A model generated the notes under the pieces. It searched no databases, had not been told where the DNA came from, and saw only the letters and a list, made by a program, of their open reading frames with translations. Below are positions 6,001 to 45,472 of a stretch of 64,000 nt of DNA, piece after piece. The stretch spans positions 806,001-870,000 of the forward strand of contig CAJFCJ010000018.1 of assembly GCA_904063045.1 (NCBI GenBank). The letters run 5' to 3'. A program made the position numbers and the translations under genes. Source of the stretch: Dimorphilus gyrociliatus. Taxonomy: Eukaryota; Animalia; Annelida. Within the stretch, counting starts at the first letter, position 1. Each line of letters opens with the position of its first letter.

Positions 6001-9000
6001 ACTTTTTCCAGTTCCTGCATTACCAATAACAAATACACTGTGACGTACTTCAAAGAGTTCTTGCAATTGGACAACTTTCAATATAAAGCTCTCTTCCGGT
6101 TGTAATTTCATTTGTACAATAGCTTTTTTTACTTCTTTTTCCAAATCTGGGTTTCTCTTTCTTGGAACATCAAGAGCAGGGAAAAGATCTCCAATGAGCC
6201 CCATGAAAACTGGAAGATCGTCAGTAACAATCTTCGGGATATTGAAATCTCTCAGAGCTCTCATTAGCACCTGTTGAATTTATTATAATGATTACTAAAT
6301 GGTAATAATGTAAAACAAATAGTGAAGATAAGGATGCTAGATGATTTAATTGAACTTAACATTTAATGTTTTTACTATTTTTTGTTTACATTGTGTTTGG
6401 TAAAGGATGACAACAACAAATATTTAAGTAATATCTATAAACAATATAATAGTGAAGGTAATGATTAATGGTTTTCGAGGGAAAATTTTTAATCAATGTA
6501 ATAGGTCCGCATAAGTGAATAAATACCGAATCCTCAGGCTGTTTAAGTTTTATATTAAAATCAAGAAGAAAATATTTTGAAAAGTAGAATAATACACGCT
6601 GTACGAACAATATATTTAAAAGATATATTTTTGATTTACTGACCTGATCTTCTGGTCGTTCTGGATCTCCTCTCTTCAATGAACCAGCAACTACCAATAC
6701 AGACTTGATAGCTCTCAAACCCCAATCATAGTGATCCTGGAAGGTAATACAATTATAATTTTTGCATATTTAAAACACACAATAATATTCTTACTTGTTT
6801 GGAGAGTAATTCTTTACAAAGCGTGTAGAGGGTGATAAATTTCCTGGCAAGTAATCTGGCTTCTAAGAAACCTTCCGCAACCAACATGATTTCGCAAATT
6901 AACTCAAAATCAGGAACAACCATAGCGCAGGGTCTAAACAAAGCTTTTAGATTTTCAGGCAGCTCTGTTCTACCAGCATAACCTGGATTCATTGTGATAA
7001 AGATACCCACAGTTGGATTGAGATTGATTTCTTCACCGAGGAAGTTGAATCTTTTCTTCTTGTCTCTAATAGCATCCTGGATACATTTCACCTGGACTGC
7101 GACTACAGACAATACTTCAACTGAAATTCTGTTGAATTCGTCAAAACATCCCCAAGCTCCTGATTGAGCCAGACCTTTGTAGATGTTACCGATGGATTTA
7201 TAATCCATCTGTTCTGAGCAATTGAAAACGTACACCATGATTCCAAGGGCTCTACCTAAATCCTTCGTTGTTTCTGTTTTACCAGTTCCTGCTGGCCCAG
7301 CTGGAGCACCACTCATAGTTAAATGAAGAGATTGTGTCAAAGTAATGTAGCATCTATCAGTCAAAGGTGTGATAACTAAACGAGGTGTATTTCCAAGGTA
7401 CTCGTGTGAATACTTAAACTGAGCATCGCAAATGTTCGCAAAGCAATCTCTCTCTTTATCATCCCATCTGTGTCTTAGTTGACTAAGCCACATGAAAGCC
7501 TGAGAACTGTCTACTTTGTTTGTTATCATTTTGGCAACAACATCTCTGGCATGTACGTCAATAGTACAAATTGTCATAATTTTTTGTCTTTCACCTTTCG
7601 AGAGTTGACCAATTAACATACTGATCAAAAGGTTCAATTGCTGAACTTGTTTTTTGTTGTAGTCTTTTAGAGCATTCTCGTAACCTTCTTCCAAGCGGCC
7701 AAAAGCTATATTAACTTCAGTTGTCCACCAGATTTGTGTAACACATAGTGCGACTTGTGCAGGGTAATCAAACAACCAGCTTTCCCTGGGCTTTTCTTCG
7801 TATGCACTCTGAGCTTCAGTCATTTCGTGCCTGACAGTTTCGCATTGAGCATCTAGTAGTTTGTTCAACCAAACTTCTACTTGACCAGTACATTCACATG
7901 GATTTGCCAAATCAACATACTCTCCATCTTTGCTGTACATAGCCAAAGCATTTTTGGTTGCATTACCCTCAGCATCCTCTTCAAACTTGAGTTGAGCCAT
8001 AGAATCAAACAATTTGGTCAAATGACGACTTACAGCAACTGGATTGTTGCCATTTGATAAAATGTCGAGTAAATCGGCAGAAGACACAAAATAAAATCTT
8101 GGGAAAGCTAGACGCTTGGTTTCTAAATATTCAGCCAAAGCTTTTTCACATAGAACTAACTCAGATTGAATGGCTTCAAGGCGTTCGTACAGTCTTGGCT
8201 TATTAGTTGCTTCTACGACATTAGTTGTGCCTTCAACCTCTACTATAAGTTCCTTAAAGTCAGAATCAATGCCATCGAACCTCTTAGAATCTTCAGGCAA
8301 TTGAGATCGAATATCTTCTGAACCAATAAAGATACTTTCAAGATGAGACCATGTTCTTTGAACTTCAAACCAAATTGAAATGACTTGATCAGCGGTAGAT
8401 AGTTTCTTTTGCCAGGAAGATACTTCTTCCAAAAAGTATGCAATAAATTTTGAAGTTAGCATATTTTGTAGTTGAACTTGGTTGTCTTCTAAAGTTTCGA
8501 TTAATTCTTCACTGGCCTTCAACAAAGTAACGCCAGTTCTTTGATGCTTTTCGTGTTCAAATTCCATAACTGCCCATGTCTGACGAAGCTCTTTAAGAAC
8601 CTTCTCCATTGACATTTCTTTGACTGCTTTATCTACGATGTTTCTAACCTCATCCTCGAATTCGTGAAGGTTTAGAGATAGTAGATCTGATAGAGTTGTA
8701 TTCTCATCCATTTGAAATTTAACTCCTGTAGCTTGCATCAATTGCTGCCAATGTCTATCACGTATAGCAGGATTCTGAAGGTCAGAAACTGCCCTTAGAG
8801 ATGTAAGCATATTCTTAACTGTGCCTTCTACGCCTGTATAGGTATCCCATGCTCTCATTTCTTTGTCTAAACTTCTAATGTCTTTGGCAAATTTCTTACA
8901 ATCCATGTCCATCTGTTCAACATTGATATCTAACCATGGTGTTGTTTTCCAGTCTTCTATTGAAGAACGAACAACAAATACATAATCCCATAATGTTTTT

Positions 9001-33000: not shown

Positions 33001-36000
33001 GATGATCACATGGATACTATTACTGGATTGTCTGCGTGCTCTAAAATGAAATTGTTTGCGTCGTCTAGTCAAGATGGAACTGTAAGGATTTGGAATGAAA
33101 TGAATAATTTGATAAGGTATAAATAAAATATCTTTATCTCTTATAGAAATTCATTATTTATGGATGAATCTTCCTTTTTTTAACTAGGTGTATAAAATTG
33201 AACGCTATTCCTCATAGCGTAGTTTTTTGTAACGATAAAGGTAACTTACTTGTTGGAATTGGAGATCATGTTCATCTAATTGACTATAAGCACTGTAAGA
33301 AACATTTCTAATAATTATCACATAATAGGATATATAAAAAATGAACAAAATTCAAATATCGTTCAGATATGCCGAAGGATTATCGATTAAAGATGGTAGC
33401 AATGCAATTCGCAAAATTTATAGATGAAAAACCAATGCCGTTTGATGAGAAATTACTAGAATTACTTACAAGAGAGGATGTAAAGCGTTTAAAAGCAGCA
33501 AGGTCATCATTCAAATTTACTCATTTTGTCGATATTCTCACGGAGGTAAAGAATAGAAACTTATATATTTATTTGAATAATAGTTAAACTTTCTATATAA
33601 AATCAATAATAGGAAGAAACAGAAGAGGTTATGAAAGAGAGAAAGGTTAGAGAGAGGGCTTTTGAAAATTTAGAAAAGAGAGATGAAGAATTGAAAATGA
33701 TAATAGAAGGTACTTTAGAGCCTAAGAAGACGATAAAAATGACAGAAAAAATTAAGACTGAAGCGTTTAATAAATACCTAAGTTTGTTCTATGAAAGACC
33801 AGAAATTAAGGTATGAATAGTGACTATTTTTTAAGTTAAGAGCATAAGGTAACTTTCTAAAATTTCATTTAAAAAGCTACCTGACGTTGATCCATATCCG
33901 GAAGATACTTTAAAGGAGTATGTATTGGGTAAGGCTCCTCATGTTATAAAAAGTACGGAAAAATCAGCCCCAGAAATGCCCATCCAAAAGATCCCTACTG
34001 GTTTCTTTCCGGATACAAAAACTTCAAGCAATACTTCCATACGTAATGATTGTTTCATACCAAATTCTGTTCTTGCCAAACTCCTTTGGCCAACGGAAGA
34101 AAAAACTTATATTCAAGACGAACAACCTTGGAAACCCCCGACCTTGTCAGACGCTCAACTACGTCAGTTAAAGGTATTTCATGATTTTCTAGCTTCTTGT
34201 ATATTGCAGCAACCTTTCTTTGAAATAATTATTACGCCTCAAAGATCTTAGATCCTCTATAGTTAGATAAAAAAAAGATGATTTAATCAACACCAAATGC
34301 ATAGCTATTATAATTAAACTATCATTCTCTAAACTCTTCTTATAATTCTCACAGAAAGTAAACTTCAGGGTAAGGAAACTAGGTCTTTATAAGTGTAAGA
34401 CAAAAACAAGTTTTGTTGCTATAATCATAAAAAATAGCCGTCTGACGTCAACGTTAGCAGTTAAACAGAGTAGAAATGTAAAGATACTATTAAATTCTTG
34501 TTGTATTATTATATTTAGGGAGACGACTTGAGGAGCAATTATTCGGTAATTCAAAAAATCACTTTCAATCTGAGTTTTAGATCAAATGAAAAAAAATTAT
34601 CACTTTTTTTTTACGAGAGAAAAAGAAGCAAGAACTTTTCTTCTTCTGTTCCCTCTCTTTCATTCTATCTTTTTTCCATACAAATACAGTATATATATAT
34701 ATATATATACTGTATATACATTCACTTTTTAAGCACCATTCATTCTTTTTTCTTTTTACAACAAAATAGGGCTAAAGTTGAAACTTTTTATTCCTTTAAT
34801 TTTATATTGTTTCTCAAAAAATGACATTAAATGATATTTCTATTAGTAAAGCATTATTACTATTATTACTAAATCGTTAGCATCATTACCATTGTTATCA
34901 TCATTATAATCATCATCATAATCATGTTTACTTTAGACGGCTAAAAGCAATTACTAAACCCCTGTTTTTACAACAGTTTTTAAAATAGTAAAAACTTGCA
35001 CAAGCCTGGGCTTTTATTTTTTTTTTTGCTTTATTTATACGTTCGTTTTTTAAATTGCACAATATAACAGATGTATATATTTATATAAAAAAAAAAAAGT
35101 CATATAAATTCTATTCATGATCATATATCGATGAAGAGGAAAGTACCTATTGATTGTATTTTTCATTAATTATGTGATCTAACGCAATGTTTTTTATGCT
35201 CGTTTGCAAACTTTGGGTGCGGTTTTGCTGTGTTTGGTGGTGGCATCTGCCGATATTGATCTAAGTAAGTTTTAGTTTGTTTTACTCTTATTCACTTAAT
35301 CTATACTTTTATGAATCATTTATATGTATAATCTATACTTTACAACAAAATTTCAACACTTTTTTATCATATTTTTTTTAGCAAATTGTATCTAAAAAGT
35401 CTGGAATTTTTTAAAAAAGTATTTCAATATTAAATTATAAACTAATTCCGACTTTTTCCTATGAATTTATTATTGTTTTTGTTTAACATTCAATGTAATT
35501 TTCCAATGAATTGTTTGCATTTCATATTTATTAATTATTTACGCTTTTAGCAACCAAAACGAAAAATTAAACGTAAAAAGAAAGAGGCCACTGAGGAAAG
35601 AGTTTTGATATTTGATTATGACGACGAAGATGAAAAGAAAACAGTAGTATCTTCGTTAGGGGAATTTGATGGTGAGAAAGCTGAATCAAGACCGGAAACA
35701 GCCAAGTCCAGCAAAGTCGATGAGGAAACAGAGCCAAGTGTTATAACCTCTTTTATGGAGAAAATTAAAGATGCTTTAGAGGATAAATCTAAAACTCCAG
35801 AATTAAAAACTCCTCCAGTAAGTTGGGTAATTTTAAAAATTATCCCTAATATCCTATTCATATACAACAGATATAGAATTTAGAACTAACCCTATTTTAA
35901 CCATAGACCTTTTGTCCTTTTATGTTTTTTTTAGTTACTAACAAAAGTAACAAGAAAGAAACTATAGGTAAATCGTAGTTGTATATATTTTTATAGAGCA

Positions 36001-38788
36001 TATGCATGTACCTATAACATTGGTGAACTTTGTTCGTATTCAATGAACACATAGTTGATAAATTTCATTCACAAATTTTCAGAGTACTATTGGAAAGTTT
36101 TTTATTGGAAACTACCCGAAAATTTGTATAAACGAACATATTATAATCTGCTTATCTTTAGCACAACGCTTAGCTGTTATGATTATTCAATGAAATTATA
36201 ATAATAATATTAATAATATTTCATTCATCTATATTTATACTTCATAGGAGTTTTGTTTAAAAAGTTTAATATTGGAGTGTTTTATTCTAGAGAACGCCTA
36301 CACCTGCCAAAGTAGCCGTTCCAGAATCTAGTGCCCGAGACGTTTTAGAAGCGCAATTAAAGAGGAAAAAAGAATTGATTTCCGATAGGCAGAAATCTTC
36401 TATTATTGCACCTCCAACAAGTAGCTTTGTTAGTGAGAGGACATCGAAATATAGCTCTAAAGATTTGGGTGGCAATGCAATTTCCGTAATGATTATGAAA
36501 CATAAGATAATAATGATACAATGAATGCATTTCTCGTTTAGGAACAAGATATACCACCGGCTTCGTCCATCGGATCAAGAACGACTATTAGATCGTCAAG
36601 AACCTCATTCAAACCTGCATCAGATCAACAACCTTTAGAGACACCGGCGGAACCTAAACCTGAAAAACTACCTTACTTTATAACCCAATTTTTTGGTGAA
36701 GAATGGATGGGAAAATATTTTCCAAATTGTAATGAGAACGTAAGTAAAACAAATGATTTTTTCTTTAAAAAAAAAAAAAGAAACTTAATTATCAATAATG
36801 AAAAGCAAAATAATCTAACAAAACATTGATTATCTAATTAGCTCATGAGAAATAATGTATACATATAGATATTATATACCTATACTTTTGATATAAGATA
36901 TTTGTATGTATATATATATATTATAATATATGTGTATATATACAGGAGGGAGAATCTGAGAGAGACGTAAGTTTGGAAAAATACCAAATTTATTACCAAT
37001 AATTAAAGTGTTTTATGCTTAGTTTTTGTTACTTTTTTGCCTATTTGTTTTATTTTTACTTGTATATATATATATATATTTATATATACAGTAGAAAGAG
37101 AGAAAAAGAGAGAGAGATAGATTTGTTTTTTATTTTTTATATTATATTTGCTGAAAATTTTATCACGCTATCGCGCTTCCTTTTTTTTATCCTTGAAAAG
37201 AAGAGAGAGAAGATAAACATTTATCCTCTATTTCCTAAAATAGATATATCTTTTTAATTATAATATTTTGTTTTTATCATTTGTTTTTGTTTTTTAACCC
37301 AATTAGACAATGCCGAAACCATGGACTGTAGCTAATTTCGTAACTATGATTGCGAGATTAATACGAATTGCTGAATATAAATTAAAAGTTCAAATTATTC
37401 AGGCTTTACAATTACTATATGACCAGCACGGGATTCCAGGTATTGTTGTTGAAAGCTGCCAAAATTTTCTAACTAACTGATTTCCTCTTTCCCTCCTTTA
37501 GATCCTCCTCTTAATACAGTCATCAAAAACATTATTTCAGTATTAAATCATCATTCTTTTCCTCCAAATTGTAAAGATCCTATGGAGAAAATGTTTGTTA
37601 TCGAGAGTTTTAAATTGCTCCATTCAGTCGGTGCTAAAGACAGAGAAACTCATGTAGAACTTATTTATTACTATTTGGAAGGAGATATTAGCGTTAGAAA
37701 TTTAATAAGCGACATCTGGAAATTGTTTGGAATTAAAGATCCGCAAAATTTCTTTAAGAAAGAATTGGATGAGTGGGATATTTGGGGAATTTCAGAAAAA
37801 GATCGACCTTCGGAAATTCGTCGAATGGCTGTACATTGGTTGGAAAAATGGTTAACAAAATTTAAAGATCAGTTGGCTTCTGCCGTCGAAAAGCTAAGAA
37901 AAGGAGAAGGAATTCAAGCTCAACTAGGACAAGATCAGTTAAAAAAGAGAAATCTAAGAAATACAAGCATAGTATGAGTACTAGTATTAATTCTTTACAA
38001 AAAATAATAATCATTGAATCATTTTCACAGACTCAATCTGAATCAACAAGATCCTTAACTGTAACATTTGACATGCCTCCTGGTGAAAAAGCTGTTGATA
38101 ATGTAACATATTTAGACGCTATTAACTATTTCGTTGATATGAGACTGCAAGCTAACCTAGCTAGAATCAGGGGCGATGGTTCATTCGCCAAAAGCGACGG
38201 AGTAGAAAGGAACACTGTATTGGTACTTCCGCATTTACCAAAGTACGTTATACCTTATTCTGCTAACTAAAGATTCACTAAATGAATTAGGGAAGTGTAA
38301 ATTTATTTTAGGGGAATCTTATCATAAAGATTAGAACTCTCATCTCGTATTGTTATATTAAGATAGAAGATACTAACTTGGATAAGATATTAAAGAAAAT
38401 TAAATAGATTAATATAGAATATATTTGTATTTGTTTATATTCATCCTCTTTTTCTATATCTTTTTAGATCGCAATGTCTAGTTCGTTTAGGAATAACTCA
38501 CACAAGTCAATGCCGACCTGAACGAGAAACCAATCTCTATAATGGTGAATATACTTTTAATCATTAGTTGTTTATTGAAAATTTTCTTTATAATTCATTC
38601 TTTTTTTCTTAACAGCTAAACAAATGAAATCCAACTGTGGCGATAGCTTTCGCTGTATTAACTTACCTATGTCAACTGTTTACGTTGATCCTTTTAACAC
38701 ACAACCAGAAAAGGAAGAACCAGTTTTATTAACATTAAAAGTGTCTCAAAAATATTTTGTACCGTCAAAATCTTATGTTGTTAATTAA
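30038..38788 (+). CDS. WDR97: WD repeat-containing protein 97 (KIAA1875)-like, many short exons
   Basis: WD40 repeats (LCTGAKDGCIKVW, FVGHESSILSLALYP..ILSSSMDNTIRVW, FASSSQDGTVRIWN), DHGPEDDHMDTITGL, IPNSVLAKLLWP, and a C-terminal helical region. Spliced reading ends ...VPSKSYVVN* at 38786-38788. Confidence 0.8.
32672..32752 (+). other. 81-nt phase1-phase1 cassette exon in WDR97
   Basis: Flanked by tttag and gtttat; open in frame (VSELAEKG...RSET); skipping preserves the frame. Confidence 0.55.
34355..34369 (+). other. 15-nt candidate microexon (KVNFR) in WDR97
   Basis: ctcacag|AAAGTAAACTTCAGG|gtaagg, phase 0-0 like the flanking exons. Confidence 0.45.
34519..34545 (+). other. 27-nt candidate microexon (GDDLRSNYS) in WDR97
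   Basis: atatttag|GGAGACGACTTGAGGAGCAATTATTCG|gtaatt, phase 0-0, a GC-rich island in an AT-rich intron. Confidence 0.6.
35166..35260 (-). other. Candidate antisense terminal coding exon (DQYRQMPPPNTAKPHPKFANEHKKHCVRSHN*) nested in a WDR97 intron
   Basis: GC-rich island; minus-strand ttag acceptor; open in phase 1 for 31 codons; minus-strand AATAAA about 135-150 nt downstream. Phase matches the EEP-gene donor at 40145. Confidence 0.4.
36946..36966 (+). other. 21-nt candidate microexon (EGESERD) in WDR97
   Basis: tacag|GAGGGAGAATCTGAGAGAGAC|gtaagt, phase 0-0 between ...CNEN and TMPKPW... Confidence 0.65.
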
Positions 38789-39020
38789 AAAACAATATCT
38801 ATTGCCTATATTTATATATGCTAATTGTGTTATATTGTACGTACTGCTAATATTATATCTATATATACAATACATATATAGATAATTGCCTAATTTAGAT
38901 ATAAAGTTGAGAAATCTATATTTAATCCTAGATTGTCAAGATAGAAATAGATGGGTTCCGTATTTGTCTTAAAAGCACAGGTAGAAGAAAGAAAGGAAGG
39001 GATCAGAGATCATTTTCTTT

Positions 39021-39023
39021 TAC

Positions 39024-39068
<45 letters not shown>

Positions 39069-39090
39069 TATATATATATGTATATATACA
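39021..39090. repeat. (TA)n microsatellite, interrupted
   Basis: About 70 bp of TA repeats. Shorter TA runs occur near 34688, 36908, 37063 and 43700. Confidence 0.9.
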
Positions 39091-40113
39091 TTAAAATTAA
39101 AGTATATTTAAAGAATCGGTCCAAATATGAACGAAAAATAAAAAATAAGAAACATTTGAACAAAGAACATTTCGGGTATTTTATGATACTAAGAAACAGG
39201 GAAATATGAGAAGAACATTCAGATAAAAATAAAAAAAAAAAGAAGACAGAATAAAATAGAAATTGATTATTAAAAAAAAGTGTAAGAAATACAGATAAGA
39301 AACTGTATAGAAATGAAATAATTGAGAAATTGCGAAATGTGCAATAAATAATAAAAATGTAACAGATTAGGATAAGAGTATATGCGAATAGATATTGAAT
39401 AGTAATTAAAAAAAAAAGATACCTTTAAAAATGCTAAAGAATTAAAAACTAATGGTGTAATAATTCTAATATTAATAATAAAAAGGTTTAGAATGTAATT
39501 ATTAAGAACAAAAATAAATTATACTATTGAAACAATTAGAAAAAAAAAGATGTTATACTAAAAATACGTCAAATAGTTCTTAAATCATTCCTTTCATTTT
39601 ATTTTTGCTTTTCGTCAATCCAGGAAGTGTATTATATCCAGCTAACAAGCAGGTAAAATTTTTGTCAATTTTTATGGCAATAGCAATCAAATATAATTAA
39701 AATCTATTGATATTATCTTTTAAAATTAATATAAGATAATATATACTGTATATACTGCTATATAAAGTATATGTATGTATATACTATATATATCGTATAT
39801 ATGTTAAGTATTTAATCTATAGCTACCAAGCATAGATAAATAGATATCATAATTATGTCTCTTTTTCGTCAAAGTTAACTTTTTGTTTATAATCATAAAA
39901 TTAGAAAAATCATGGATAAAAAGCATTTAAAGTAATATTTTCCTATTATTTAATAGCATGTTTTTTAAAGCTATTCTTCACTCTGTCTCTTAACTCTCTC
40001 TCTCTGTATATCTATTTATCCATGACATCTAGATGAAATATAAGAGGAAAACAATGTCAATAATAGGTAATATCTTCGTCGAACGGACGATACCGCTCGA
40101 ATTCCCGGTCTAG

Positions 40114-41380
40114 TCAGCTGACCGAGCAGACGTTCTCGTACATACCTGGCTGCTGAACTATCTGCTCTTCCAAAGTATGAACGCTTATTCTCCTCTCGCG
40201 ATAATCCAATTCGTCTAAAATTTCGTCTCCGTTTGCACCATTAGTCGCCTCCTCTTCCTCCTCTTCTTCCTCCTCTCTCTCAATCGAATAATTATTGTTT
40301 CTACTCTCTGTTTGTCTATCAAAGTCTTCTATAGTTTTTGCTCGAATTTTTGAAGGCGTATCAAATGTAACATCCCCTATAACGGGATCGCAATAGAATG
40401 CATCTTCAGCATTTATGTTTGCCTCTCCTCTCTGCCGACGGAGATCAACCTTGGAAAATAAAAGTGGTTCCACATCCGGCATATGAACATCAGCAGTTGT
40501 AAGAAAGTAATCTGAGAAGTTGTAAGTAATTAACAAACTAAGATTAATAGGCTAATCTAAAGAGATAAGAAACACTTTATACTAGATCAACCGCAAACAA
40601 CTATGCAAGGCAAGATAAATGCTAAGAATTACCTGAGGAACGAACCATACGTCTAGACGTTAAGGGGTCGTAACCGTGACAAGATACTCCATTCGGTAAA
40701 AGATCTATGGCTTCAAATATATTTAATTGAAAAGTTCCTCCTATGACTACTGGCATCTCCTCAACAGATGACACATTCAACGCAAAAGCCGTAAGCAATT
40801 TGAATACAGACACTGCTCGAGTTTTGCATAAACAATCGTCCGTCAACCAGGACATAACTAATAATTTTCTATCTGGAACAGATCTATCCTTCAATTTAGC
40901 TAGTACAAAATTATTTTCTGGCAGATAATGATAAGGAAATCTTCCCATTTTTTGAAAATCGAATAAAACCTTTCATAGATAATATACACTAAGCGTATTA
41001 ATCAAACATAAGAATTAGCTAACATTATTGAACTTAGGCCTATTTAATGTATATTATCTATAAACCTTCCGATAATGCTTGTCATCCGTCATCATTCTAA
41101 AGCGTTCTTTGTTGAATATTAAGAAAGATTTATTCGTTCCAACCACGGTATATGAAGATGGTGGTCTAGGTTTAAATGATGCTCGGTGACCAAAGAGAAT
41201 TGAGACTTTCTTTTGATGGATAACATGCTCAATTAATAGTTGACCATACTTTTTCTTCTCCGTGTTTGCAAATCTTCCACTTAAGTTCATAGATACGACG
41301 GTTGTGTTATCGTGAGAAGATATCGACTTTTTCGTATTATTTGATAATATTCCGTTCTTGTCTAATTCAGATGCAGCCAT
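40114..41380 (-). CDS. Uncharacterised EEP (exonuclease/endonuclease/phosphatase, DNase I-like) fold protein with substituted catalytic residues; 3 exons; possible readthrough to 40057 and alternative 3' exons
   Basis: Spliced ORFs 41054-41449, 40622-40948 and 40114-40536 (aag|gtttat..gaaag|gtt; tcag|gtaatt..ctcag|at). Motif order VVSMNLSG / ILFGHR / PVVIGGTFQL / SDYFLTT / FYCDPV parallels the APE1 motifs SWNVDG / LQE / GDLN / LDYFLLS / SDHCP. Acidic tail follows. Confidence 0.65.
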
Positions 41381-41724
41381 TTTCGAGCTAAATGCAGGTG
41401 TTCGATACGAATTTTGAGTTATACAGCTGTTGTAATTGATTTTTTTCAAAAATAACGTCGTGCTGTTTTTTATATATATGAGTTTAGTCTCTTTTTAAAG
41501 GTTTGGTGATGATTCTAAACGTAAGAATTTCGATTTTCCTCTTTTTTTTCTTTTACATAAAATTTTTCACTGATCATTCTAGCGGCTTTGAAAAGCGCCA
41601 TCTAGCTACATCTTTACATTCTCACGATAACTCTTCATGGATAAAATGTTCATGTATTTTTTTTTGAATTTGATGAATAAATTTTTTTGTAATACAATAT
41701 ACTGCAAAACTAAACATATTCAAT

Positions 41725-42015: not shown

Positions 42016-42025
42016 ATCACGTGAC
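42016..42025 (+). promoter_or_regulatory. CLEAR-like E-box (ATCACGTGAC) upstream of the lysosomal glycosidase
   Basis: 9/10 match to GTCACGTGAC, about 25 bp before ATG 42051. Confidence 0.5.
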
Positions 42026-42050
42026 AGGCCTTAAGTATACTAAAGTTAAA

Positions 42051-43507
42051 ATGGAAGTGGTCCAAAATATTTTTGTTTTTTTATTTCTAACGAATTTAAG
42101 ATTTGTATTTAACCTAAATAATAATTTAGCGAGAACCCCGCCTATGGGATGGCTATCTTGGGAGAGATTTGAATGCAATACAGATTGCATGAATGATCCA
42201 GATAACTGTATCGGGTTTGTAGGCGGAAGCAACTGTTTAGGTTAATTGCGTTTAGTCTATAATATTCTGCAGAGAGCGATTAGTTAAAACAATTGCTGAT
42301 GCAATGGTCGAAAAAGGGTTTAGAGATGCTGGTTATACTTATGTTACTCTAGACGACTGCTGGCCTGCCAGGGAAAGAGATAAGCAAGGACGCTTACAGC
42401 CTGATCCTTTAAGATTTCCAAACGGAATAAAATACTTAGCCGACTACCTCCACTCTAAAGGCTTAAAACTAGGTCTCTACGAGGACATTGGCACTCACAC
42501 TTGTGCTGGATTTCCCGGAACCCAAGGTCATTGGAAATTAGATGCTCAAACTTATGCGGACTGGGGAGTTGATATGATAAAATTTGATGGCTGCAACTCA
42601 GATGTTCAACATTACGATATGGGTTTGTGATGAAAATCTATATTTCATTAATGAAATTTATATTCATTCTTTGGAAAGGTTTTCCTTTAATGGCGAAATA
42701 TTTAAATCAAACGGGACGACAAATTTTATATTCTTGCGAATGGCCTTTATATGAAAGAGCTCACGGAGTAAAGGTATAATTAAATTCTCATTTAACTAAA
42801 GTTTACATTTTTTGATAATTTCTCCTTTAAGCCAAATTATACTGCGGTTGCAGAAGCTTGCAACACTTTTAGAGTATATGGTGATATATATGATGCTCGT
42901 CAAAGTATTATGAGTGTCGTTAATTGGTATGGAGAAAATCCAGGAGGCTTCTTAAATGTGTCTGGGCCTGGCCACTGGAGCGATGGAGATATGATTACAT
43001 TAGGTAATTACGGTCTCAGCCATAGCGAAGAAAGAACTCAAATTGGAATGTGGGCAATTTTTGCATCTCCTTTACTAATGTCTGTCGATATAAGAACAAT
43101 CAACGATAAATCTAGAAGACTTTTACAACATCGAGGTGTTTTAAGTATTAGTCAAGATAGTTTAGGAATTCCTGGAAGAAGAATTTTAAATGTAAGAAAT
43201 GTAGCTAAAAATTAAAAATTCTATAAAAATAAATCATTTCCAGATGGAAAATGGAGCTATTCAAGTTTGGGTAAGACCTTTGGCACCAAGGGGAACTTTC
43301 GCCATAGCTACAATATACACCAATACTTTTGGATACCCTATAAAAGTGTCAACGAAGCTGTCTGACCTTGGCTTAAAAAATCCAAACGGCTACAACGTAA
43401 CAGAAGTATTTGATGGCATTCATAGGGGAGAGTTTAGGTCAAATCACAATTACACAAGAATGGTTAAACCAACTGATATTGACTTAGTTCTAGCTAAGGT
43501 ACTATAA
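42051..43507 (+). CDS. GLA: GH27 lysosomal alpha-galactosidase A / alpha-N-acetylgalactosaminidase family enzyme, 5 exons
   Basis: Hydrophobic signal sequence, [28 protein letters not shown] (nucleophile), [14 protein letters not shown] (acid/base), [13 protein letters not shown] versus NAGA orthology is not resolved. Confidence 0.9.
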
Positions 43508-43895: not shown

Positions 43896-45472
43896 TTAAC
43901 AGTACAAACCGGCATTTTCGATTTCTGCCTCACTGTCATCTTCGTCATCATTATTTGGAGCTAAGGTAACTGTTCGGACGTTGGCCATAGTAGCTGTTGT
44001 AAAAGGTAAATTATACTTCAAGATTGGATAATATAATACAAGAGCAGTACCTTCTATGTCATCTGAAATATCATTCTTTACTCTATCCATATTCTCTTTT
44101 TTCCTAGCAGATTCTCTCTTTTCCTTCATTTTTTCATACATTGGTAAAAATTCTCTGCAAGATCATCAATTAAACAGACATATAATATGTATACTGTATA
44201 TATGTAAAATATAGCTTTACCTCTCATATTCGAATCCACATTTATTGGCGGCAGCTAAGAAGTCGTTTAATCCTGTTCCGGTTAGAGAAGAAACTGCTAC
44301 GGGCTGTAAATTTTCATTTAATTTATGAGAAAATCGATTAACTTAGATTTCAAACTTACGGATAGATGACTGTAAAATTCATCTAAAACAAGGCTCATTG
44401 ACCGAGTAAGATTTGAAACGTAAGAAGTGTCATCATTTAAGGCTTCCTGAAAAGTCTCAAAGTCCTTCATCCACTCAAAAGCGAAACTAGGGTTGATTAT
44501 ATCAGCCTTTTTAAAGTAAATATTTTAATTATATATATATATATTCCACAAATTGAAGAGTTTTTACTACCTTATTGAAAACGATTATAAAAGGTAATTT
44601 CATTTTATAAAGAATACTACAGGCGTACAGCATATTTGACATAAATGTCACAGGATTTACGTTTCGAGCTGTATCTACAATATATACAATTGCTGTGGCC
44701 ATAGAAGCTGCCTAAATGTGGAATACAAGACTTTAAATTAATGATTTTTTAAAAAATTTTCAACCCACAATGCTTTCGCTGATAATTGTTCCCGAGGCAG
44801 ACCAGGTAAAAACTTCGATTTGACCAGGAGTATCTATCACAACATATTTTGGAGCACTTTTGTCTTTAGGGTTACATCTTTTTTCAATAATTGATAAGAC
44901 CTAAATATAATCATTTATCTTTAAAAATACATCTAATTGACTATATCCAACAAAGTGTTTTACTTGATCAAATGCCATTGAAAATAGGTTCAATGACGTA
45001 ACAATCCCTCCGTTGGGTCCAAGACCATATTGTTTCATAACTTCTTTATATTTAACTGTATCTCTTATATCTAAATAAAAGTTGATGACAGAATTGCTCT
45101 ATTTCAATTTTAGAGTAAACTAACCAATATTTGCTGGAAATGGAACTTCTTTGACAGCGGGATCCAAATTTATGACATAAGGTGGTGTTTTTTTTGAATG
45201 GAGAAAAGATGTAAGTCTCTAGGGAAGAGAGATACAGATTAGCAAGTCAGACTAAACATTTCGCAACAATTGAGTAAAACTTATATTATCACTCATTCAC
45301 AAATGAAAGTCAAGTTGCTTACTTGAACAAAGGCAGTCTTCCCTGACCCAGCCATACCTAAAACTATTAAACAAATTGGTTTGTCATAGGGCTTATTTCC
45401 AGAAGTTTCTTGAGCAGGTAGATCATCTGATTCCATTGTATTTGGTTCTTCTAAACCAGGCGCCGCCGCCAT
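43896..45472 (-). CDS. GPN1: GPN-loop GTPase 1 (XAB1)
   Basis: [70 protein letters not shown], acidic C-terminus. Confidence 0.95.

Follow-up and report, generated by a model that had tools for sequence, protein, structure and literature searches.

A conserved UGA-CUAG stop within a facultative intron of a Dimorphilus gyrociliatus gene and the structured RNA element that probably surrounds it

We analysed a UGA-CUAG stop codon in a 64,000-nt stretch of the genome of the annelid Dimorphilus gyrociliatus (contig CAJFCJ010000018.1, positions 806,001 to 870,000). This stretch is called the window, its coordinates are used throughout, and the gene under study lies on its minus strand. The gene is small, has three or four exons and is confined to this worm lineage. 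A sequence-only reading of the window had proposed that the stop undergoes programmed readthrough, giving a C-terminally extended isoform. The interpretation that we favour, with confidence somewhat above an even chance, is that the codon serves one of two mRNA forms as an ordinary, conserved stop, and that it lies inside an optional intron, within a structured element that probably sets intron retention. A purposeful readthrough tail is unlikely. The known phenomenon concerned is regulated intron retention giving alternative C-termini.

Transcript evidence was taken from contigs of public runs placed on positions 35600-41500. The data being contigs rather than raw reads, they define isoform ratios, strand and transcript ends only approximately. 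Contigs of run X5 were spliced and 100% identical to the window, and were therefore considered to be RNA of the same species; run X3 represents a relative with approximately 92% identity to the window. The gene model comprises the following parts, in which L001 is a genomic contig of a more distant relative.

41066-41380, minus strand: coding exon 1, 315 nt, 105 codons, ATG at 41380-41378 (spliced contigs of X5 and X3; 85% nucleotide identity to L001, with third-position bias)
40970-41065, minus strand: intron 1, 96 nt, GT..AG (contig joint 40965-41062, cut +4)
40633-40969, minus strand: coding exon 2, 337 nt, 112 codons plus 1 nt (contig joints 40965-41062, cut +4, and 40511/40633)
40512-40632, minus strand: intron 2, 121 nt, GT..AG (contig joint 40511/40633)
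40146-40511, minus strand: coding exon 3, 366 nt, ending in ...EEQIVQQP plus the first base of the next codon (contig joints; alignment to L001)
40029-40145, minus strand: facultative intron 3, 117 nt, GT..AG (spliced joint 40028/40146 as well as unspliced contigs)
40012-40028, minus strand: start of exon 4, with the tail of the spliced isoform (...P-DVMDK) and TAG at 40014-40012, followed by the 3' untranslated region (3'UTR) (contig joint and sequence)

Intron 3 holds the final 10 codons of the unspliced reading frame, together with the TGA, the CTAG, the whole candidate extension and a second TGA. In X5, the contig with the spliced joint of this intron has a depth of 98.2, and an unspliced contig over 40042-40096 has a depth of 125.8. 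The depth of introns 1 and 2 in the same run is zero, the bin depths being equal to those of the exon parts alone; hence the unspliced intron 3 derives neither from genomic DNA nor from bulk pre-mRNA. In X3, an unspliced contig with a depth of 116.3 covers 40007-40175, and there is also a short contig of depth 73, whose loose end matches the sequence just below 40028 and fits the junction 40028/40146. Because contig depths are rough, we limit the claim to both forms being abundant; about half of the messages remove intron 3. The segment is thus not always spliced out; constant removal was what the sequence-only reading had named as fatal to its proposal. No contig over 35600-41500 joins 40146 to any site besides 40028. 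Alternative last exons further downstream were considered and rejected, since the sole joint from 40146 in this interval goes to 40028.

With its canonical GT..AG ends, both of its forms in RNA and its neighbouring introns fully removed, intron 3 behaves as a retained intron. Its length of 117 nt is a multiple of three and its composition is more exon-like than that of the constitutive introns (GC 43.6%, versus 30.6% and 24.0% in introns 1 and 2), as in exitrons. A strict exitron has no internal in-frame stop; as the TGA at 40116-40114 lies inside intron 3, we consider the intron exitron-like and not a strict exitron. Its donor, CAGGTATGT, is as near to consensus as, or nearer than, the constitutive donors AAGGTTTAT and CAGGTAATT. 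An alternative reading frame is open across intron 3 in the window, and is closed by a TGA in L001.

The two mRNA forms encode different protein ends. The unspliced mRNA gives a protein of 349 amino acids that ends in GMYENVCSVS before the TGA, and the spliced mRNA gives one of 344 amino acids that ends in ...QQP-DVMDK before the TAG at 40014-40012. The last four codons of the unspliced form read as a CaaX-type box.

40117-40128, minus strand: codons for Cys-Ser-Val-Ser, the CaaX-type box of the unspliced isoform (translation; identical in protein cluster P0001, which is carried by L001)

A CaaX box works only at the very C-terminus. The end ...NVCSVS has the sequence features of such a box, with Cys at -4, an aliphatic a2 residue and Ser as X, and the same tetrapeptide is the farnesylated box of human INPP5E (PMC9444247). 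By analogy, we infer that -CSVS is a CaaX-type box that would need its C-terminal position for farnesylation. The GMYENVCSVS tail is identical in L001, although the protein encoded by exon 3 is merely 61% identical in amino acids. The tail of the spliced isoform carries no CaaX-type motif and is unconserved, with DVMDK in the window versus, as predicted from its sequence, a single residue followed by TAA in L001. Both stops lie in the last exon of their own transcript, so neither form would be an obvious target of nonsense-mediated decay.

We then examined the stop and the stretch behind it. From 40146 down to 40057 on the minus strand, the codons are exactly those that the sequence-only reading had given, and the open reading frame (ORF) of 140 codons at 40536-40114 (minus strand) terminates in ...GTC AGC TGA.

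40114-40116, minus strand: TGA stop of the intron-retaining mRNA (window sequence; no difference listed in contigs of X5 or X3; same codon in L001 and in a second genomic contig, L002)
40110-40113, minus strand: CTAG directly 3' of the stop, forming the leaky UGA-CUAG context (invariant in L001)
40060-40113, minus strand: the candidate extension LDREFERYRPFDEDITYY, made up of the 18 sense codons that follow the stop in frame (86% identity to L001, no indels)
40057-40059, minus strand: second in-frame TGA (window sequence; conserved in L001)

The seven bases TGA CTAG at 40116-40110 (minus strand) form the leaky context described for readthrough, in which UGA is followed by C and at best by CUAG. 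Several descriptive claims of the sequence-only reading were borne out. The GC content is 45.6% in 40057-40113 versus 29.8% in the adjacent 57 nt at 40000-40056, where approximately 46% and 30% had been claimed; the stop sits in the palindrome GTCAGCTGAC; and the donor at 40145 said to compete with the stop is real, with CAG/GTATGT at 40146/40145 and the spliced junction 40146/40028 in two species. The TCGTC/GACGA hairpin that it had described after the stop is broken in L001, and an overlapping 8-bp hairpin, TCGAGCGG/CCGTTCGA, is kept instead. To judge these features against chance, we counted TGACTAG in the window and found 5 occurrences versus 6.1 expected, so the motif is not enriched. The chance of an equally long open run after a stop is about 0.16-0.34 at local composition. 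Judged on the window alone, motif and open frame are correctly described and within chance. As the comparison with relatives indicates, the feature that exceeds chance is conservation, not the motif or the open frame.

Relatives were sought with several searches. A word search with the exon 3 ORF returned one cluster, P0001, located on the Logan genomic contigs L001-L003, which come from three runs and carry the same neighbouring genes (Melibiase, ATP_bind_1). An exhaustive HMMER profile search with exon 3 against 1.84 billion representatives returned P0001 alone; a word search with exon 2 gave no match; and two scans of JGI metagenomes, with a protein pattern and with a conserved DNA motif of 28 nt, respectively, returned nothing. 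Comparative evidence stays at three species because these wider searches gave nothing more. Pfam and PDB sequence searches, run separately on each of the three exons, yielded no usable family, and an ESM Atlas feature search on exon 2 yielded nothing usable. By the outcome of these searches, the gene is lineage-restricted or fast-evolving.

The genomic contig L001 keeps the donor, the TGA-CTAG, the 18 codons, the second TGA and an intron length of exactly 117 nt, and UGA-CUAG is the same in L002. The extension aligns to L001 over 57 nt without indels, so that frame and second TGA are kept. This preservation does not discriminate between explanations, as constraint at the nucleotide level would give the same result. 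The nucleotide identity between the window and L001 varies along the gene as follows.

Exon 1: 85%
Intron 1: 82%
Exon 2: 86%
Intron 2: 49%
Exon 3: 69%
First 32 nt of intron 3 (tail codons and stop): 97%
Extension: 86%
Rest of intron 3: 68%
Downstream of intron 3: 59%

Exon 2 encodes the most conserved part of the protein, with 98% amino acid identity to L001 and 45 synonymous versus 2 non-synonymous changed codons. Exon 3 has an acidic low-complexity middle. Between X3 and the window, a single difference is listed in 40047-40145, at position 40096; while the three coding exons have 29/366, 33/335 and 21/408 differences. Such strong selection on the region rules out that the TGA arose as a sequencing error or as a recent nonsense allele, and its presence in same-species RNA contigs and in two other species identifies it as a genuine stop.

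Next, we asked which kind of selection acts on the region. If the extension were maintained as a readthrough product, then a coding signature would be expected between the two stops. Codon-position tests were performed on the one informative species pair, the window versus L001, with exons 1 and 2 and the alignable part of exon 3 serving as coding sequence (CDS). In the CDS, 21, 19 and 114 changes fell at codon positions 1, 2 and 3, respectively (74% at position 3). In the extension, the corresponding numbers were 3, 4 and 1, and the changed codons were 1 synonymous versus 6 non-synonymous (Fisher p=0.0008 versus CDS). Only 1 of the 18 extension codons had a third-position change, versus 40% in the CDS (p=0.002); while positions 1 and 2 were changed more often in the extension (7/36) than in the CDS (40/574; p=0.015). 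Third positions are conserved approximately five times as strongly as the synonymous sites of the CDS, also upstream of the stop; no coding signature was found between the two stops. The suppression of third-position changes also includes the 19 codons up to and including the stop. Across the whole 38-codon block at 40170-40057, third positions changed in 3/38 codons versus 114/287 in the remaining CDS (p=5e-5).

In this species pair, constraint is therefore shown to be equal at all codon positions over the stretch that begins about 25 nt before the donor and ends with the second TGA. Equal constraint that runs through both the stop and the donor is the sign of an element acting at the RNA level, and the approximately 110 nt at 40170-40057 are, on this comparative evidence, conserved as RNA and not as codons. 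The proposal of programmed readthrough was right about a real and conserved stop with its context, about the frame, the second stop and the competing donor; the coding signature that it had looked to in the extension is the part that failed.

We then asked whether the block folds. In its 95-nt core (40170-40076), three adjacent hairpins were predicted both in the window and in L001, folded separately (z -2.1 and -3.1), and they persisted in longer folding contexts.

40124-40167, minus strand: predicted hairpin 1, its 12-bp stem interrupted by one bulge and its loop holding the 5' splice site CAG/GUAUGU (-16.2 kcal/mol, z -3.3 alone; same stem in L001)
40107-40123, minus strand: predicted hairpin 2, with the UGA in a 4-nt loop (invariant between species, so it offers no covariation test)
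40079-40100, minus strand: predicted hairpin 3, the 8-bp stem TCGAGCGG/CCGTTCGA with a 6-nt loop, starting 13 nt after the stop (same prediction in L001)

The differences between species avoid the predicted stems. Both changes in hairpin 1 are unpaired. Of the four in hairpin 3, three fall in the loop and one in the stem, at 40096, where a G.U pair becomes A-U in X3 and L001. When the structure predicted for the window sequence by itself is applied to the whole 95 nt, L001 differs at 7 positions, of which 6 are unpaired and the seventh is this G.U to A-U change (hypergeometric P=0.013). Intron 3 folded alone was not significantly stable (z -1.39); the folding signal depends on including the exon sequence next to the donor. 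The block resembles no catalogued RNA: Rfam gave no match at the gathering score in the whole window (SECIS, snoRNA and miRNA included), nor at E up to 10 in 39500-40700 (SECIS included).

Herein, we describe how the two protein ends might be set. The donor of intron 3 is at least as good as the constitutive ones, yet about half of the mRNA keeps the intron; we therefore propose, by analogy with other regulated donors, that hairpin 1 limits access to this otherwise strong site. The structured module would set the use of the donor and hence the retention ratio of intron 3, which in turn would set the proportion of CaaX-bearing to CaaX-less protein. Splicing of intron 3 would thereby toggle a putative lipid anchor. 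Since a CaaX box must be terminal, this would also explain why a stop is conserved at precisely this position. On the unspliced mRNA a minor leak is plausible, as UGA-CUAG is intrinsically leaky: a few percent of the ribosomes may read on for 18 codons, and such a leak, if any, would bury the CaaX box. In view of the extension peptide showing no protein-level selection, any readthrough product is taken as a by-product.

Several points weigh against this interpretation. Strong RNA-level constraint could mask a weak coding signature, and the conserved UGA-CUAG, frame and second stop, the raised GC and the nearby downstream hairpin are what programmed readthrough predicts. The step from hairpin 1 to splice-site use is an analogy. 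No base pair carries a compensatory double change, and the hairpins are predictions backed solely by the positions of the changes. The codon conservation of GMYENVCSVS could itself stem from the RNA element, so the CaaX reading is not proven. Contig depth is no measure of isoform ratio. Finally, the comparison covers three species only, one of which is known just as a list of differences.

If the leak itself were selected, no selected peptide would be needed. The leaky stop and the downstream hairpins would fix a fraction of CaaX-masked or destabilised protein, and the RNA signals alone would be conserved. Such a device would explain why the leaky context and its adjacent structures are conserved at the nucleotide level while the extension peptide is unconstrained, and it fits a box that needs a terminal position, as CSVS does in INPP5E. 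UGA_CUAG genes that lack a coding signature may still read through efficiently (Loughran et al., PMC4132726). However, splicing of intron 3 already removes the CaaX box, which would make a second device redundant, and the conserved block is centred no less on the splice donor than on the stop. We consider a selected leak rather unlikely.

The block may also be some other cis-element of the unspliced mRNA, acting in protein binding, localisation or stability, with an incidental stop context. Uniform nucleotide-level constraint suits this explanation, as does a block with no Rfam family and no compensatory pairs in a gene that holds further conserved non-coding pieces (intron 1 at 82%, an inverted repeat in the 3'UTR). 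It does not account for a block centred on an alternative donor, for changes that avoid the predicted stems, or for the predicted hairpin 1, where a 12-bp stem closes the loop that contains the 5' splice site. This explanation is unlikely, and slightly harder to sustain than a selected leak.

Programmed readthrough proper holds that UGA-CUAG is decoded at a set rate and that selection maintains the 19-residue extension X-LDREFERYRPFDEDITYY as a functional C-terminal isoform. Its case begins with TGA-CTAG, frame and second TGA being kept in L001 without indels, with raised GC and with a conserved hairpin 13 nt after the stop. In the extension, 13/18 residues are identical to those of L001, and two of the changes are Tyr to Phe. 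In mammalian reporters, UGA_CUAG gave readthrough of about 3.5-31%, and 12 nt 3' of the stop suffice (PMC4132726). In Drosophila, readthrough genes are most conserved and most structured between about -25 and +75 nt relative to the stop (PMC13278127); the equivalent region is conserved here too, which leaves readthrough a small probability. The pattern of change is nevertheless wrong for a selected peptide: 7/8 extension changes are at codon positions 1 or 2, with 1 synonymous versus 6 non-synonymous (p=0.0008 versus the gene's own exons), and constraint extends upstream of the stop at synonymous sites, uniformly over codon positions. Furthermore, approximately half of the mRNAs splice the region out, and readthrough would bury the conserved C-terminal CSVS box. 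Overall, we regard a selected extension as quite improbable.

A bolder combination, to which we give equally little credence, is that a single 95-nt module of three hairpins couples splice choice (loop 1) with termination or readthrough at UGA-CUAG (loop 2), setting the farnesylatable CaaX fraction. If true, the module would be a combined splicing-and-recoding switch for lipid anchoring. That the UGA is a selenocysteine codon is next to impossible: annelids in general retain the selenoprotein machinery and the in-frame UGA has an open frame behind it, but neither SECIS nor any other Rfam family matched (gathering score in the window; E up to 10 in 39500-40700), no coding signature is seen in the frame behind it, and a CaaX-type box ends the protein just before the UGA.

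The locus can be placed beside several known systems. The UGA-CUAG readthrough genes OPRL1, OPRK1, MAPK10, AQP4 and MDH1 (Loughran et al. 2014, PMC4132726) have the identical seven-base signal, a genuine conserved stop and a second in-frame stop close by. However, these mammalian cases were chosen by a positive coding signature, whereas the extension here evolves as non-coding RNA; and the present stop lies inside an optional intron and is known from sequence and RNA contigs alone. Exitrons (Marquez et al. 2015, PMC4484396) are likewise introns with coding sequence and a length that is a multiple of three (117 nt in both species here), more GC-rich than the constitutive introns of their own gene, and with both forms abundant. 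Unlike intron 3, classical exitrons carry no stop. Due to this stop, retention versus splicing of intron 3 swaps the C-terminus and the stop, and makes no internal deletion.

A parallel for the two protein ends is offered by prelamin A and lamin C, which are CaaX-bearing and CaaX-less isoforms formed by alternative 3' processing. As in that pair, one isoform here has a Cys-a-a-X end and the other does not, through an alternative splice near the 3' end. INPP5E (PMC9444247) shares the CSVS tetrapeptide, and differs in that prenylation is only putative here; Pfam and PDB searches exon by exon found no sequence relation to INPP5E or to any solved structure. The proposed control of the donor has counterparts in MAPT exon 10 and in TSL2 of SMN2 exon 7, where 5' splice sites are regulated by a local stem-loop. 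In all three, a stable stem, here a predicted one, holds the donor and flanking synonymous sites are conserved. The present donor differs in being predicted in the loop of a 12-bp stem and not in the stem, and its effect on splicing would follow from this likeness.

As a readthrough candidate the locus is weak, and it cautions against inferring readthrough from nothing more than a UGA-CUAG motif followed by an open frame. The finding that remains is that, in a compact annelid genome, an alternative donor and a stop are enclosed by an RNA block that is unusually conserved and apparently structured. This block seems to determine if the CaaX-type lipidation box is present on a lineage-restricted protein. 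The locus would be a small and clean test case for structure-controlled intron retention; and, if the stop is leaky, it would test UGA-CUAG leakiness outside vertebrates and insects.

Further conserved non-coding elements of the gene were observed. Intron 1 (40970-41065, minus strand) has 82% identity to L001 versus 49% for intron 2, and its 96 nt are a multiple of three. The 5'UTR/promoter stretch at 41383-41520, which is shared with a head-to-head gene of alpha-galactosidase type, is 88-90% identical to L001. The 3'UTR holds an AU-rich inverted repeat with core GATAAATAGATA and its complement, at 40008-40024 and 39831-39847 in the window, and at 6452-6464 and 6649-6661 in L001. Its arms are 160-184 nt apart and are kept in both species, though the sequence between them is not alignable. 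The first arm falls on the beginning of exon 4, including the TAG that ends the spliced isoform.

The surroundings of the gene contain the following neighbours, of which the order of the Melibiase_2 and ATP_bind_1 genes around the locus is kept in L001.

42021-43507, plus strand: alpha-galactosidase/alpha-N-acetylgalactosaminidase-type gene (Melibiase_2), head to head with the gene under study (domain match)
44318-45472, minus strand: GPN-loop GTPase-type gene (ATP_bind_1) (domain match)
36291-38786, plus strand: neighbouring gene, ending near 38800 (spliced contigs)

The plus-strand gene at 36291-38786 is also represented by spliced contigs of 90-99% identity in two marine metatranscriptome runs, X1 and X2; the worm or close relatives are thus present in environmental RNA samples. 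In one X1 contig, a junction of this gene is moved by one base (37970/38031, one extra letter) relative to X5 (37971/38031).

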